Source: Lepidodermella squamata
Lineage: Eukaryota; Animalia; Gastrotricha
Direction of reading: 5' to 3'
Assembly: GCA_047495785.1 (NCBI GenBank)
Contig: JBLDXI010000032.1
Span: 1,178,001 to 1,242,000, forward strand
DNA length: 64,000 nucleotides
The notes beneath the pieces were generated by a model. That model was not told where the DNA came from, made no database searches, and worked only from the letters and a program-made list of their open reading frames with translations. Below are positions 3,098 through 12,228 of the stretch, one piece after another (within the stretch, counting starts at the first letter, position 1; each line of letters starts with the position of its first letter). The translations under genes were made by a program, and so were the position numbers.

Positions 3098-3169
3098 AGG
3101 GGACACCCGGGTTTGAACCGGGGACCTCTCGATCTGCAGTCGAATGCTCTACCACTGAGCTATATCCCC
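3098..3169 (-). tRNA. tRNA-Cys(GCA)
   Basis: Reverse complement GGGGATATAGCTCAGTGGTAGAGCATTCGACTGCAGATCGAGAGGTCCCCGGTTCAAACCCGGGTGTCCCCT folds as a cloverleaf, anticodon GCA, U73 discriminator, downstream T6 Pol III terminator. Confidence 0.97.
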
Positions 3170-3652: not shown

Positions 3653-6600
3653 TCAGGCCGACTCGCCTCCCTGTCCACCTGTGTAGCTGTTTTTGATAGC
3701 CCAAGCGAGTTTATCCTCGAAAATAGCAATAATAAGCATGAGACCAAAGCCGATAAGCATGCCGACGTTTTGCCAGGCGAAATATTTCCAAAAATTATCC
3801 GTCACTCGCGTTAATTCAGGCATCTGTAGAAATTGAACAAATTAATTACAAAAATTATTGAAGAAATATTGTTTACCATTTCGGTCAAGGCAACGTAAAT
3901 AAACATTCCCGCTGTAAGGGCGAAAACCCACTGCCGAGTTGAAACGTCAGTCGCGATTCCAAGGCCGATATACAAGCCGACTACAAAAATCTCAATTTGT
4001 TACAATATTTTTGAAAATATGCGGAATATTACCGAAAGCGAGTAGGGTGTGTATAACATTCCAAATTAAGGCGGCTCGCCAGGTCAAACCGGCGGTTAAC
4101 AGTGCAGCAAAATCGCCGACTTCGTGAGGAATTTCGTGGCAAGCGATAGCAATTGAAGTCGACATTCCAGAGACAAGATCTTCTGAAAAAGCAGCGCCTA
4201 AAAATAATAGAAATTTATCCCTAATTCAGAAGAATATTTCTTCAATACCTATCGCGATTCCATCAATCAAATTGTGAATCGCATCGCCCATGATCACCAT
4301 CCAGCCAAAAGCTTTCTTCGGAACACATTCTAAATTAAGGAAATTTTATCAAAATTTAAGGAGGAATTTTCTAATTTTTTACCATGAGCCAGAGTTTTAC
4401 ACAAGTTCCATAGCCCACCGCTGCATGATAGGACGCGAGCCTGCGCGTCCTTTTGGCTCTTCTCAATGACCCTATTGTCGTAGTCCAGCGTGTTAATTGA
4501 ATCTCGCGGCAGATCGGACGAACTTGAATCACGGGGAATAATCGAGGCGAGAGAATCAGCACTCGGCCTCTGATGCAGGGTGTTATGCTCCGGCTGTGCC
4601 CCGATCATATTCATCGCATTCCCGTCAACAGACGCCATAGCTTTGTCAAACGCCTCGCTAACCGAATCGCGGAACACGTTGTCGTTATCCTGATTGGCCG
4701 GTGGGATCATGAAAGTCGGCGATGTTGGCGAGGTGGGTGACTCCTGGCGTGGGGCAGGCGTTTCTGGTACCATGCCCCAGTTGTCGAAAGCAACGCCGTT
4801 TTCAGCAGCAACTATGCCGTTGGGTGTCTGGAATGAAACTGTTGGCAAATGGCTGTGGTCGTGTCCGTGACCGTGGTTGTCATGGCTATGGCCGTGATTT
4901 TTAGCAGCCGCGATTTCACCGATATCCGGAATGTGTGAATGGCCGTGTCCATCCTTTAAAATTTTCATCAATCCAAGTTCCAAGATCTTAAATTTCTTAC
5001 CCCATGGCCATGACCTTGTTTAGCATGGTGTCGGCCGCTAACTAACATCTCGAACCTAAGAATATACATATAATTTGTTGAGGGAAATTTTAGAGAAAAA
5101 TAATTACAAATAAAAAGCGTAAATTGCTGCTAGGGCGACGAGTTGTTTCAGGACGAAATCTTCGACTTGGACGATATCGATGTCATAATTAGCATCGCCA
5201 CTGTGGTCACCGTGAATGGCTAAGGCTTGCGGCAACAAATGTAACAAGGCATCGCCGAGAAGGGTTGCCGTAGAAAGCGCTCTATAGACGAAAAATTGAT
5301 TAAATTTTTGCAAATTTTTATAAATCTTACATCAGACAGCTCATTATATAACGATAATTTTGCCGTTGGGCGGATGGAATGATAAGAAGGAACACCATTG
5401 AAACAAGACTGATTGCGAACACGGCCAAGGTACCAAAACCGAATTCTTAAACAAAATTATGTTCGGAATAGCTTTCGAAATATACTAAAGCTTACTTTGA
5501 TCAACTGAAGGCTGCAATTTGTCAGCTAGTTTTACAGTCGCTGCACTGCATGCCTTCGAAATTTGCTGTTCAATCATGGCTGGGAACATGAGCGTTAGGT
5601 TTTCGTAAGACAATGTATCGTTCACAGTAAATCCGTAGATTTTTAGGATCTGGTCCGATCTGAAGCAATGCTATAGGTATTTAAAAAACATGATTAATTC
5701 GGAATAAAATATTTTTTTAATTTATTTGAACCTTCTCTAGAGTTTGGCTTCGTGAATCCACGCTTCGTTTTTTCCGCGAATGACTATGCCGATCGTGGGA
5801 ATGGTCTGTATGAGACACGGTCTGCGCAGTGCCGATCCCGAGTGATTTCAATAGAGCTTCGAATTCTGAAAAATCGCAAAATAGTCTTGAAACTGCATGT
5901 ATATAAATTCAATATTTTAGCTGAATATTTCAACCCAATATCTTGATAAAAAATTTCAAATGAGGCCACTTTCAAGTTTGACGTTTCCCTTTGAAAATGG
6001 AGTTTGAAAATTCCGATTTTTTTTAATTTCCGAAAGTTCGCGAATTTTGGACTTAAAATTTGATATAATAAATGTGTCTTGAATATTCATTAAAATAACT
6101 TACTGTCAGCGGCCAGGTAACTGGTTTCATTTAATTGAAGAAGAGCTTTGATATTATCTTCGAAATATTCAGGCCCATGGCTTTCCAGTTCAAGTAACTC
6201 CTCATCGTGGTCGTGGTCATGGTCCTCATCTTCGTGCGAATCACCGTCGTTGTAAAACGATTCATCAGAACTCGGCACCAAGGGACATTTCACATCAGGA
6301 ATGTAACCTGAAAAATGATACAGTTTTTTAGAAATTTCAGAAAATTTCAGGAATTTACCCAAGCTAAGGTACAGCAAAGCGTCGATTGCGGCAGAGTCGA
6401 ACATTTCCGCGTGTCCAACCGTTGATTTATGCCTCGTAGTACCGCGCTTGTAATGCCGATGATGGGCAGTATCGTCGCTGTTGAAACAAGCCGCGGCATC
6501 AACCGGCCAGTTCGGCGCCGTCTCGCTCAATAACCGCCGCTGAGCCCGAGATAAACGCTCGACAATCCCAGCAAAATCATCGCCCTTCAACCCATACTCA

Positions 6601-7340
6601 GCCACAGCTTTTTGATGCCACGGTTTCGTCGATTTTTTCGACGATAGTACAAGTTCGATTAGTCGAGCTTTCGTCGATTCTGAGCTGCATTTGAGTAGGC
6701 TTGATAACGAATCCGTTTGAGTCACCTCGTCTAATAGCAACAACCGAACAGTATTCACCGCAACTCGGGCTAAACATTTCGAATCAGCGAATTGATCCAT
6801 CGCAGCGATTTCGTCGCTTTCGTGCGAAACGCCCATGATTGACGTTGCCAACACTTCAACCCAGGTGTTGTTACGGAAAATCGCGTCACTCAAGCATGTC
6901 GATGAAGTTGTGTGTACCCAAGTTTTCAGAGCTCGAACCAGCACCACCTCGACTTTTTTCATCAAAATCGAGCCGCAATTTTTAACCGGAATTGTTTGTT
7001 TTGTCGTCGAGTCGTCATGTTCGTGCCGAGATGACGTAGTTTGCAGGGTGTTTCTTAACGAGTGAACTCGTTCCTGCCGATTGACTGTCGCGATATCTAT
7101 CGCGTTTTCACGCTCGGTTGATTTTTCGAAGGGCCACCGGTTTTTGGCATCTGACGCCTCGTCGTTGTTACTGTGAAAGACTTCGTTAATTTTCGGAACT
7201 TGAATTTTAGCGAAATGTTGAACTGGTTCTTCTAGACTGGTTTCGTTCGCTACAACGGATTCAGTGGCGCTGGTAAGGCAGAGGCATTGAAGCGTGACGA
7301 CGCAGATTAGCAAGCAGGTTGTGCAAAGGCAGTGCGGCAT
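3653..7340 (-). CDS. LIV-1 subfamily ZIP zinc transporter (SLC39A6/10-like), ~12 exons, long His-rich ectodomain
   Basis: Signal peptide MPHCLCTTCLLICVV; LLGDALLHLLP; His-rich loop; IMGDAIHNLIDG; CHEIPHEVGDFA (LIV-1 HEXPHE motif); ends QNVGMLIGFGLMLIIAIFEDKL...GESA*. Confidence 0.93.
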
Positions 7341-9810
7341 TTTATATCGATATCGGTGTCGATGGCTCCGCTCCGATCTAAACCCGCCTTTACACATAAT
7401 TTAAAATCCTAAATTGACGGAAAAATAGTGTCCTAAATATTGCTAGTTTTTTTTAGGACAATCAAGGAACAAGGAATTTTGAAAAATATTTATCAAACTG
7501 CGTGCTGAATGAGTGCTAAAAGGGCGACTTGGAAAGGTTATGCAGGTGCGCCGGTCACGGAATACACAATTTCTTCTTTCAAGGTAACTTATTAAGGGTG
7601 TGAAAGGTCTTTTATTTCGGCGCGAACGCCTCAGAAAAACTACCCATTCGTTATCGAAAATACGATAAGCTATAATGACCAGGTATGAAACAGGTTCGGA
7701 TAACCTGTGTCTGGCACCCTCTGCCATGAGAAGATTAAGCGTAATTAGCAATTAAACAAGCATAGGTAATTTATCGGTAGTGTGATTTTTTTTAAACGCT
7801 CATACCAAAAAAAACCAGGAAACCCGAAAAATATACACGTTTTCTAGGTTGATATAATGTCAGACCTGACTATATAGCAACGACACTGGCATTCCAGTAA
7901 ATACTAGCAAATACTGCCTGCATATATGATGTTGGTATATAGTAGGATATTCATGCAATAATACCAGTAGGGTCAACGTTATTTTCGCTGCTTGAATTGA
8001 GATTGTGGTGGGTAAAAACACAGGTGAAATGAAGATGTAAGCGCTCAGCCGCGGACATGGCGCTCTTGTCGCGAAACGCGCCGCCGCCACATTTGGCTTG
8101 ACGTTTCTAGTGTCTTCCGTGCAGCTCGGACATGTTGATGTACATGGTGCCGTCTCTTAATACCCAGTGGTAATGATATATTAGGCATCACGGAATGCTA
8201 GCTTTAAACAAACCAAAAATGACAATTACACCAGAGTTTATTCGTAGTATTAAATGGTGCTTTGTTGTCATAACTTGTGGTGCAGCTAAAAGGCGTTTTC
8301 CCAACGGCGAATTTCGACAACTCGAATTAATTTATTTTGCCGTTTATACGCACATCTCACCGCTTATAGAGATAAAACGCTGTTTGATTTCAGTCGAAGA
8401 TATTTTGATCAGCAACCTTCCGACATTTTGCAACTTCCAGACAACTAGATGAACCGCAGGCGATATTGATCCTAAAATAATTAATCATTAAAACTTATAA
8501 GAAGGTGCAGCCGATTACATTGGAACACTATCGTCATTATGATCCCGAAAAAGGGTTATTTCAACGTCGTTCAACGTCATAAAAATGGTGATAGTTGAAC
8601 AGTTTTTGAACGAGGCCGAATCATATAGAATTACAACCGAATAAAATGACGTGAAAATCCAAATTAGAGGGTAGCCTCGTTTATCTTGCTGTCAATCATT
8701 CAAACTCATTCACAGGACTGGGGTGCGGAGTATGCCATACGATGTGCATGCCTTGAATGGTGGATATTTTCGCATCTTTTCGGAGATAGAAAATGACGAG
8801 AATAGCGTATGCAGTTACGCCAGCAAATAGTACCTTTTTCACAAACCAATAATCGTTTGATAATAAAAAGTTTCAGGGAGCGATTTTCCTGGCTTTAGCT
8901 TGACAACAGCTGTGCGCAACACCACAGCTTCGATTCTAAGAAAGGAAAAGGAATGGCCTTGATACGGCCTTGATAAGCCAGATATGGCCTTGATTGATTA
9001 GTTTGGCTTAGCGCTTAATTAACCGTGAGTCATTCGTTGCAAACACCCCACTAGCATGTCACTAATGTCTATGTGTTTTCTGTTCGTCATTTCACGAAAC
9101 AAAATCAACACGCAACACGATTTCCTCGAAAAGCAATGATGGCTTAAAAACAACCATGCTTCATTCTGCTTATTCTACTTATCTTGATAGATCTTGGATG
9201 AGATTCATTTCCTGCGCTGCAGTGGAAGACCTGGAATTCAAAAGTATTTTTCACTTTTGAAGTAATTCTGATCAATGAGTTCACGTAGGATGATCTCCGA
9301 AAAAGTTGGACTGAATGAAATGTTTGACTGGCAAGAAACTTTGCTGAATTCCGAGAGGATTGAGACTCCCGAGAACATTCATGGAGCATTTTATCACAAA
9401 TTGTATCAAACAAACAGGCTTGTTTCACGTATTGATTGATTTTTATCGTTATGGATGGATCTTGGTTGTTTGCAGTCTCGCGGCGTCTTGATCAGCATTC
9501 CAGTTTCTGTTGAGTTTCCTGTTTTAAGCCATCTGAAACAATGACACGTTCCACTGTTACATGGAATTCCCATGTAAACGATGTTCTAGAGAGTCAAAAA
9601 TCAATCTATAACTCCTCGTTGAGAACTGAGAATCAGATATCATGGGGTCCGGACTGCGAGTGACGGCTCGTGGGTTGCGCGCTTCGCGGGCCGGAACATG
9701 TCAGGGTTGAAAAAACCCCTGCGGACAAGGCTATTAATTTTTATTAATTTTATTTGTTTGTAGATTATAATTTTATATTCATGCTGATTTTGAATTAAAA
9801 TATTTAAGCA

Positions 9811-10069: not shown

Positions 10070-12228
10070 ATGATCCGTTCGTACTTACTCCTCCTGTTGG
10101 TTGGAGCTTCTTTCGTTTTCGCCGAAGAAGCCGCCGAAGATGAAGGTGTCCTCGTTTTGACCAAGGGTAGCTTCGATGATACCCTCGCTAAGCACCCCCT
10201 CACTTTGGTCGAATTCTACGCTCCGTGGTGCGGTCACTGCAAGGTATGATACTTGACTAAATCAGTGATAAGCATTTATTGTTTTTTGTCTTAGGCTCTC
10301 GCCCCCGAGTACGCCAAGGCTGCCCAGACCCTTAAGGAGGAGGGATCTGAGATCAAGTTGGGCAAGGTTGACGCTACCATTGAGTCTGAACTCGCTGAGA
10401 AGTTCGGCGTCCGTGGCTACCCCACCATCCGCTTCCACAAGAACGGTGACTGGAGCGAATACACTGGCGGTCGCCGCGCTGAGGAGATCGTCGCCTGGTT
10501 GAAGAAGAAGACTGGTCCCCCGTGCAAGCCTTTGAACTCCGCTGATGAGGCCAAGGCTTTCGCTGACACCAACGACGTCGTTGTCGTCGGTCTCTTCAAG
10601 GAAGGTTCCAAGGACATTGCTGCCTACGAAGGCGCCGCCTCCAAGTTCGACGATGTTCCATTCGCTCTCACTTCCAACGCTGATGTCTACAAGCACCTTG
10701 GCAAGGAGGGTGACGGCATTGTTCTCCTGAAGAAGTTCGACGAAGGCAAGGTTGTCTACGATGGTGAATACAACGCTGACGAGATCCTCAAGTTCGTCAA
10801 GAAGAACCGTCTCCCGACCGTCGTTGAGTTCAGCCAAGAGACCGCCCAAAAAGTCTTCAGCGGTGAAATCAAGCAACACGTTCTGCTCTTCATCTCAAAG
10901 GCCGCCAGCGACTTCCAAGCCAAGCTTGATGAGCTGACCGCTACCGCCAAGAAGTTCAAGAACGAGGTGAGCCTAGGAATTGAAACTAGAAATTTGCTTG
11001 CCACACAACAGCTGCAGGGAATGCATTCAATCATTCATCTAGCCAGTTCCCAGTTGTGGATAGTCTCCATAGATGACATAATCAAGCAAATAGATTGATG
11101 TATTTATTTCGCCCGCTTGACATCTAATATTTTTTTCTATTACAGTTCATCTTCATCTACGTCAACGTCGATGAGGACGAGAACGAGCGCATCCTCGAGT
11201 TCTTCGGCCTGAAGAAGGAACAGACCCCGACCGTCCGTCTCATCGTTTTGGACGAAGACTTCTCCAAGTACAAGCCTGAAGATTCTACCATCTCGTCCGC
11301 TGTCATTACTCAGTTCGTTGAAGATTTCAAGGCTGGCAAGCTCTCGGTAAGTTAACGCGTTGATTTATCTGACTTGCCACAGCTTAGCTGCGCACTTCCG
11401 AATCAAGTTGAAAATGCGCCTGTTCCCGCTTGTGGATAGTAGTTGAACGATGCCTCTATACGTCCATCTCACTTTCTATTTAGAGATGACCGTACGCTTG
11501 GTGTCGTATATTAATTTTGCTTTTTTCATATTTTTAGCGCCATCGTATGTCCGCTGATGAGCCCGCTGACTGGGATGCTACCGGTGTCAAGGTTTTGACT
11601 GGCAAGTCTTTCTTCGATCGCATCAAGGGCAAGAACGCCTTCGTCGAATTCTACGCCCCGTGGTGCGGCCACTGCAAACAACTCGCCCCGGTCTGGGACC
11701 AACTCGGTGAGAAGTACAAGGACCACGCTGACATCCTCATCGCCAAGATCGACTCCACCGCCAACGAGGTCGAAGGCATCAAGATCCAGAGCTTCCCGAC
11801 CATCAAGTACTTCCCGAAGGACGCTAAGGAGGTGAGTTCACAGGGTCATTCAATGTTCACTTCTTCATAATTGTGTCTGCCTCTCAGCCGGTCGCCTTCA
11901 ATGGTGAGCGCACTTTCGATGCTTTCGTCAAGTTCTTGGAGTCTGGCGGCAAAGAAGAGGTACGTCTTATTTGTTATTGTTGTGCGGCGCGCGGTTGTGA
12001 CCGGTTAATGTCGCGTTGTTACGCCGCATTGTTGGTGCAACGCCGTAACAGCGCTCGTTGACCCGTGCGAGTCTATTTGCCCACGGCGACGCGTTGTTTA
12101 GGAATGCTCGGGTGACACGACGCAGCTAATTAATAATAATTTTCTTTCTGTATATCCAGGCTGCCCCTGCTGAGGATGAACACGACCACGACGGCCATGA
12201 CCACGACCACGACCACGGTGAGCTGTAG
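10070..12228 (+). CDS. P4HB: Protein disulfide isomerase (P4HB/PDIA1-like); exons 10070-10243, 10295-10966, 11146-11346, 11538-11831, 11888-11959, 12160-12228
   Basis: Signal peptide, two [11 protein letters not shown] active sites, a-b-b'-a' layout, C-terminus [15 protein letters not shown] (KDEL-like); strong codon bias; all introns GT-AG and frame-consistent. Confidence 0.96.
10992..11091 (+). ncRNA. Single-hairpin or degenerate H/ACA guide paralog in PDI intron 10967-11145
   Basis: Shares CTTGCCACA..AGCTGC..GTTCCC..TTGTGGATAGT with the element at 11374; pockets CAGCT / GTTCCC; closed by a 9-bp outer stem ATTTGCTTG/CAAGCAAAT. Confidence 0.55.
11374..11513 (+). ncRNA. Intronic box H/ACA snoRNA (two hairpins) in PDI intron 11347-11537
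   Basis: Hairpin - H box ATAGTA (11436-11441) - hairpin - ATA box (11508-11510); both pockets are complementary to conserved 28S rRNA segments with 14-15 nt spacing to the boxes. Confidence 0.82.

Follow-up and report, generated by a model that had tools for sequence, protein, structure and literature searches.

A probable SNORA63-type box H/ACA snoRNA in a protein disulfide isomerase intron of the gastrotrich Lepidodermella squamata

The PDI gene and its introns

The window is the whole stretch of L. squamata DNA that was analysed (64,000 nt; contig JBLDXI010000032.1, positions 1,178,001 to 1,242,000 of the forward strand), and all coordinates below refer to it unless another contig is named. 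On its plus strand lies a gene for a protein disulfide isomerase (PDI). An exon-by-exon search of the protein against Pfam identified thioredoxin and Thioredoxin_6 domains in the flanking exons, which defines the product as a PDI; homologues carry the source name protein disulfide-isomerase A1. The introns were delimited by spliced contigs with GT..AG joints from the transcriptome runs X1, X2 and X16. The gene is laid out as follows.

10070–12228, plus strand: coding region of the PDI gene (PDIA1/P4HB-like), six exons
10244–10294, plus strand: PDI intron, 51 nt
10967–11145, plus strand: PDI intron that holds the paralogue, termed A
10998–11132, plus strand: paralogue A, located with a covariance model
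11347–11537, plus strand: PDI intron, 191 nt, host of the candidate snoRNA, termed B
11832–11887, plus strand: PDI intron, 56 nt
11960–12159, plus strand: third long PDI intron, 200 nt, GC-rich

The joint of the host intron was mapped to 11345/11537 (cut +1) in X1, X2 and X16. The candidate nearly fills this intron, with 27 nt left upstream and 24 nt downstream, while the two PDI introns of 51 and 56 nt hold no RNA. Expression of the PDI gene is very high, which is the usual trait of snoRNA host genes. Just past the 5′ splice site of the host intron, the motif UUAACG(C)GUUGAUU is conserved in the window (11352–11366) and in a close relative described below (L006:2799–2811). Apart from this motif and the snoRNA, the flanks of the host intron are unalignable between the two species.

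The third long intron was also considered as the source of an RNA. Run X1 yielded a contig of 125 nt at low depth that spans 11962–12086 within it and is probably a pre-mRNA remnant. The fold of the intron is no better than that of shuffled sequences (z = −1.1), Rfam returned noise only, neither H/ACA nor C/D boxes were found, and the counterpart intron of the relative could not be aligned. Given the lack of conservation and a fold not above that of shuffles, there is no detectable RNA in this intron. Elsewhere in the window, the sole Rfam match at the gathering threshold is a tRNA gene (3098–3169, minus strand, 70 bits) whose anticodon reads GCA (Cys) by eye. An 18-bit match to Afu_182 on the minus strand was dismissed as chance.

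Architecture of the candidate and its conservation

The candidate box H/ACA snoRNA B is about 137–140 nt long and was delimited by its fold, its orthologue and covariation. It is made up of the following parts.

11374–11513, plus strand: candidate box H/ACA snoRNA B
11377–11435, plus strand: 5′ hairpin, with pocket strands UUAGCU (11384–89) and C-UGUUCCC (11420–27)
11436–11441, plus strand: H box AUAGUA, fitting ANANNA
11447–11507, plus strand: 3′ hairpin, with pocket strands CUAU (11456–59) and ACGCUU (11494–99, extendable into GG at 11500–01)
11508–11513, plus strand: AUA box (11508–10), directly past the 3′ hairpin, and 3-nt tail UUA; predicted 3′ end

The lower stem of the 5′ hairpin is formed by CCACAGC (11377–83) and GCUUGUGG (11428–35), giving 7 bp with one bulged U, and the upper stem by GCGCA (11390–94) and UGCGC (11415–19). 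In the 3′ hairpin, ACGAUGCC (11447–54) pairs with GGUGUCGU (11500–07) in the lower stem, and CAUCUC (11465–70) with GAGAUG (11483–88) in the upper. The H box follows its pocket at a distance of 15–16 nt, and AUA at one of 14 nt. An earlier note on this DNA had proposed the succession of hairpin, H box, hairpin and AUA at 11374–11513 (plus strand), and all of these elements are present there. Likewise, its assignment to the intronic box H/ACA snoRNAs agrees with class features predicted at canonical spacing within a GT..AG-spliced PDI intron. Unconstrained RNAfold returns the two-hairpin shape at −38.9 kcal/mol, an energy equalled in 2 of 200 dinucleotide shuffles (z = −2.7). In an independent DNA run no variants fall inside B, and three fall in the preceding 235 nt (11139–11373).

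The query to the protein collection was the ORF of the exon that follows the intron; full-length PDIs were thereby filtered out on length. The best match, with 88 % identity in the adjacent exon, lies on genomic contigs (L006–L008) from ENA metagenome assemblies and represents a close relative. Third codon positions of the two PDI genes are only 58–65 % identical, and unconstrained sequence is therefore expected to have diverged heavily. All three long introns are shared. The relative's gene (L006:1546–3563) is without the two short introns (51 and 56 nt) of the window gene; short introns have thus been gained or lost between close relatives.

In the orthologous intron of the relative (L006:2785–2991) an orthologue of B was found at L006:2826–2965, scoring 78.7 bits with an E-value of about 9e-19. 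Its 5′ hairpin is the same as that of B but for the apical loop and one bulged nucleotide, and no strand of either pocket has changed. The lower stem of the 3′ hairpin has been rebuilt by four double compensatory changes, with the distance from pocket to box still at 14 nt, and the sequence folds alone into the two-hairpin shape of B. Conservation and covariation in a related PDI intron, whose absence the earlier note had named as refuting its proposal, are thus both apparent. The last A of ANANNA is lost from the orthologue's H box, which reads AUAGUG, and a canonical ACA stands in the alignment column of the window's AUA.

The covariance model built from B alone detected only one further match in the window, paralogue A, which lies one intron further upstream and scores 32.9 bits with an E-value of about 2e-6. 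A keeps the lower stem, the AGCU/GUUCCC pocket, AUAGU and the AUA box, and the 5′ strand of its 3′ pocket is altered. Blocks identical in A and B are CUUGCCACA, AGCUGC, GUUCCC, UUGUGGAUAGU, CGCUUG and AUAU; identity between the apical parts is about 30 %. The alignment of A and B has 93 % of its cells paired, with both sides changed in 11 pairs, against 0–3 in slid controls. The H box of A is AUAGUC, off ANANNA at the last position. The relative has a corresponding copy, A′, in its own preceding intron (L006:2426–2563), with the H box AUAUUA, which fits ANANNA, a ACGCUUGG strand and an ACA box that stands, as in the orthologue of B, in the column of AUA and at a spacing of 14 nt. AUAGU is thus kept in three of the four copies (B, A and the orthologue of B), with AUAUU in A′.

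The two species differ in parallel at the second position of the 3′ box, with AUA in both window copies (11508–10 and 11127–29) and ACA in both copies of the relative (L006:2960–62 and L006:2558–60). This parallel difference possibly stems from gene conversion or from tolerance of the variant in one lineage.

In an alignment of six distinct copies, which was fitted to the structure derived from candidate B itself, the share of paired cells is 86 %, and both sides have changed in 15 pairs, against 1–7 in slid controls. Unfitted MAFFT alignment of four copies followed by RNAalifold recovered the 5′ hairpin only, as MAFFT misaligns the 3′ hairpins when no model guides it.

These comparisons bear on whether B might be a decaying or silent copy that makes no stable particle, its sites being left to a guide encoded at some other locus. 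Depth in the Logan contigs of the transcriptome runs is zero over 11418–11493, which would agree with silence; the libraries are probably of the poly(A) type, from which a snoRNA would be lost in any case, and the contigs are therefore silent on the expression of B. AUA in place of ACA and the H boxes of paralogue A and of the relative's orthologue, both deviating from ANANNA, point the same way, and dead members are frequent among tandem duplicates. However, guides, stems and spacing have been kept despite a difference of 35–42 % at silent positions, the stems through compensatory changes, which would be unexpected of a dead copy. The AUA box, put forward in the earlier note as a variant out of the ordinary, is moreover a recognised form of ACA (PMC6984369, introduction; PMC7991803), and the relative has ACA itself at the same position. 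A silent copy is therefore regarded as very unlikely.

More distant PDI loci (L009–L013, 59–68 % identity) were scanned with the four-copy model, filters off, and no snoRNA copy was found in them; hosting by PDI is thus seen only in the window species and its close relative. On one of these contigs two PDI-like genes are inverted relative to one another, with some 3 kb between them (L012:3088–4369 and 7019–8294), and neither has a snoRNA copy. A metagenome scan with the b′ exon returned spliced PDI transcripts only (L001–L005), which contain no introns.

Pairing with 28S rRNA

The strings used for pairing were short stretches of human 28S printed in PMC12477938, compared by a local script. The human segment holds GGGAACG-U-G-AGCUGG and AAGCGU-U-C-AUAG, 101 nt apart (PMC12477938). 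The second U of GCGUUC is U4390 in the old numbering (PMC4092089), and 4420 and 4390 are the two numbers of this position (PMC9941101). With U4390/4420 fixed, the other site is 4491/4521. The earlier note had named both sites as targets of the two pockets, and both strings are indeed present in human 28S.

The 5′ pocket of B is antisense to GGGAACG-U-G-AGCUGG at human 28S 4521 (old 4491) over 7 + 6 bp; opening of the lower stem would allow up to 8 bp 3′ of the target. A guide C adjoining the upper stem is unpaired and a G-U pair stands beside the target uridine; the geometry is slightly non-canonical. The 3′ pocket is antisense to CCAAGCGU-U-C-AUAG at human 28S 4420 (old 4390) over 9 + 4 canonical bp. 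Here the geometry is canonical, with two unpaired target nucleotides and 14 nt to AUA. The target assignment rests on the human segment together with the invariance of the guides; a scan of viral contigs with the 28S stretch containing both target sites gave no matches. B is very probably a working H/ACA snoRNA for pseudouridylation of the uridines that correspond to human 28S 4420 and 4521.

The frequency of such pairing by chance was estimated with strict motifs, in which both antisense strands are Watson–Crick only, the apical part spans 22–60 nt and the box lies at the right distance. The strict bipartite motif for each of the two 28S sites occurs once in the 64-kb window (both strands), and both occurrences are in B, in tandem. 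In 200 dinucleotide shuffles the mean number of strict single motifs per window was 0.33 and 0.53, and none of the shuffles contained the strict tandem pair. When G-U wobbles are allowed, single motifs number about 17 and 28 per shuffled window. Wobble-tolerant single motifs being so common, the strength of the case lies in exact pairing, tandem arrangement and stems. Chance origin of the motif pair is excluded.

The same figures bear on the reading of B as a functionless pair of hairpins that arose by chance in an AT-rich intron. The abundance of loose single motifs would speak for it. Against it stand the absence of the strict tandem from all shuffles, the fold z-score of −2.7, and an orthologue with covariation at an E-value of about 9e-19. 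This explanation is refuted in practice by the conservation and has a negligible probability.

In yeast, the equivalent of the 5′ pocket target (human 4521) is position 2944 of 25S, where the pseudouridine is guided by snR37. The gene for snR37 is independently transcribed and not intronic. The yeast equivalent of the second site, U2843, is m3U and is not known to be a pseudouridine.

The 3′ pocket of paralogue A, AUAAUC/CCGCUU, does not fit the 4390 site, while A′ of the relative still does. The string CCAAGCGUU occurs twice in 28S, and against its second occurrence the 3′ pocket of A forms 6 + 6 pairs with three unpaired target nucleotides, which is a non-canonical arrangement. A may have been retargeted, with CGCUUG kept and AUAAUC pairing with GAUUGU past the second CCAAGCGUU (old 4462/4463, next to the A-loop). 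This is considered rather unlikely; if it were so, a lineage-specific pseudouridine would have arisen through duplication and a change in one strand. A literature search for old position 4463 as a known pseudouridine yielded nothing usable.

Relation to SNORA63 and predicted function

At Rfam gathering thresholds no snoRNA family matches anywhere in the window. In a permissive scan of the intron with 4227 families, SNORA63 (RF00092) was the sole H/ACA match on the strand, at 19.3 bits, with an E-value of 0.56 over all families and about 1.3e-4 for SNORA63 alone. Since SNORA63 had been named before the search, the per-family value is the fair figure, and it is still far from membership, the gathering threshold being 90 bits. 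No match between the relative's orthologue of B and Rfam SNORA63 was found at E-values up to 10. In the alignment of B with the Rfam SNORA63 consensus, where ACA is aligned to AUA, both have GUUCCC at the same place in the 5′ hairpin; the 3′ hairpins agree in CUAUAC, in ACGCUUGGU and over some of the apical loop (UUUC.UAU.UAG). SNORA10 gave no Rfam match in the candidate.

Deryusheva, Talross and Gall (2019; PMC6984369) showed that SNORA63 of vertebrates, human included, has in its formerly orphan pocket an antisense element for 28S-4491 that is highly conserved, besides the one for 28S-4390, and that SNORA63 maintains modification of 28S-4491 where SNORA10 has been lost. The earlier note had held that two functions carried by separate human RNAs are combined in B; this is wrong, since SNORA63 already pairs both guides and the layout is a known one (PMC6984369). 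SNORA63 (E3) is, like B, intronic and of two hairpins, with the 5′ pocket directed at 28S-4491 (4521) and the 3′ pocket at 28S-4390 (4420) (PMC6984369, PMC9941101). Human SNORA10 resembles B in guiding the 28S-4491/4521 uridine (PMC6984369), the target of the 5′ pocket of B, but its other pocket is directed at 18S-210 and not at 28S-4390. Several vertebrates have lost SNORA10 or changed its target. Unlike SNORA63, B has AUA and not ACA in the window species, resides in PDI and has a tandem paralogue in the adjacent intron. The host gene of human SNORA63 is EIF4A2.

B is very probably an intron-borne H/ACA snoRNA, and since its two targets and the order of its hairpins are as in vertebrate SNORA63, it would be the functional equivalent of that RNA, and probably its orthologue at some distance, residing in another host gene. 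A genuine guide for both sites could also have arisen without descent from SNORA63, by independent convergence or by shuffling of antisense elements between families. The 19.3 bits against a threshold of 90, the relative's orthologue without a match and a host gene different from that of vertebrates are compatible with such an origin, and antisense elements are documented to move between non-homologous snoRNAs (PMC6984369). Yet the targets are the same two, in the same hairpin order, the match reaches beyond the guide strands into the 3′ apical loop, and SNORA63 is the only H/ACA family that matched. Separate origin thus keeps a small but appreciable probability. With a score below threshold and an orthologue that has no match, descent of B from SNORA63 is no more than suggested. 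B stands as a conserved H/ACA snoRNA, probably unannotated until now, with the target pair known from SNORA63.

By analogy with known intronic H/ACA snoRNAs, splicing of the PDI pre-mRNA would release the 191-nt intron as a lariat that is then debranched. Exonucleases would trim the intron back to the RNA protected by dyskerin, Nhp2, Nop10 and Gar1, leaving a predicted product of about 140 nt that ends three nucleotides past AUA. The resulting snoRNP is predicted to isomerise two 28S uridines near the peptidyl-transferase centre, each at 14–16 nt from its box (H or AUA). That the RNA accumulates, is bound by proteins and brings about both modifications is inferred. That modification of rRNA might be coupled to PDI or UPR transcription, as the earlier note proposed, is speculation, the data showing only that expression of the host is very high.

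B reveals no new mechanism; it is a further example of a snoRNA in a different, highly expressed host gene. To our knowledge no snoRNAs have been described from gastrotrichs, and B is a snoRNA annotation with good support from an animal lineage that has hardly been studied. With it, the combination of two guides known from SNORA63 and aimed near the peptidyl-transferase centre reaches a protostome, and its presence there fits the view that the SNORA63-type combination is old and conserved.
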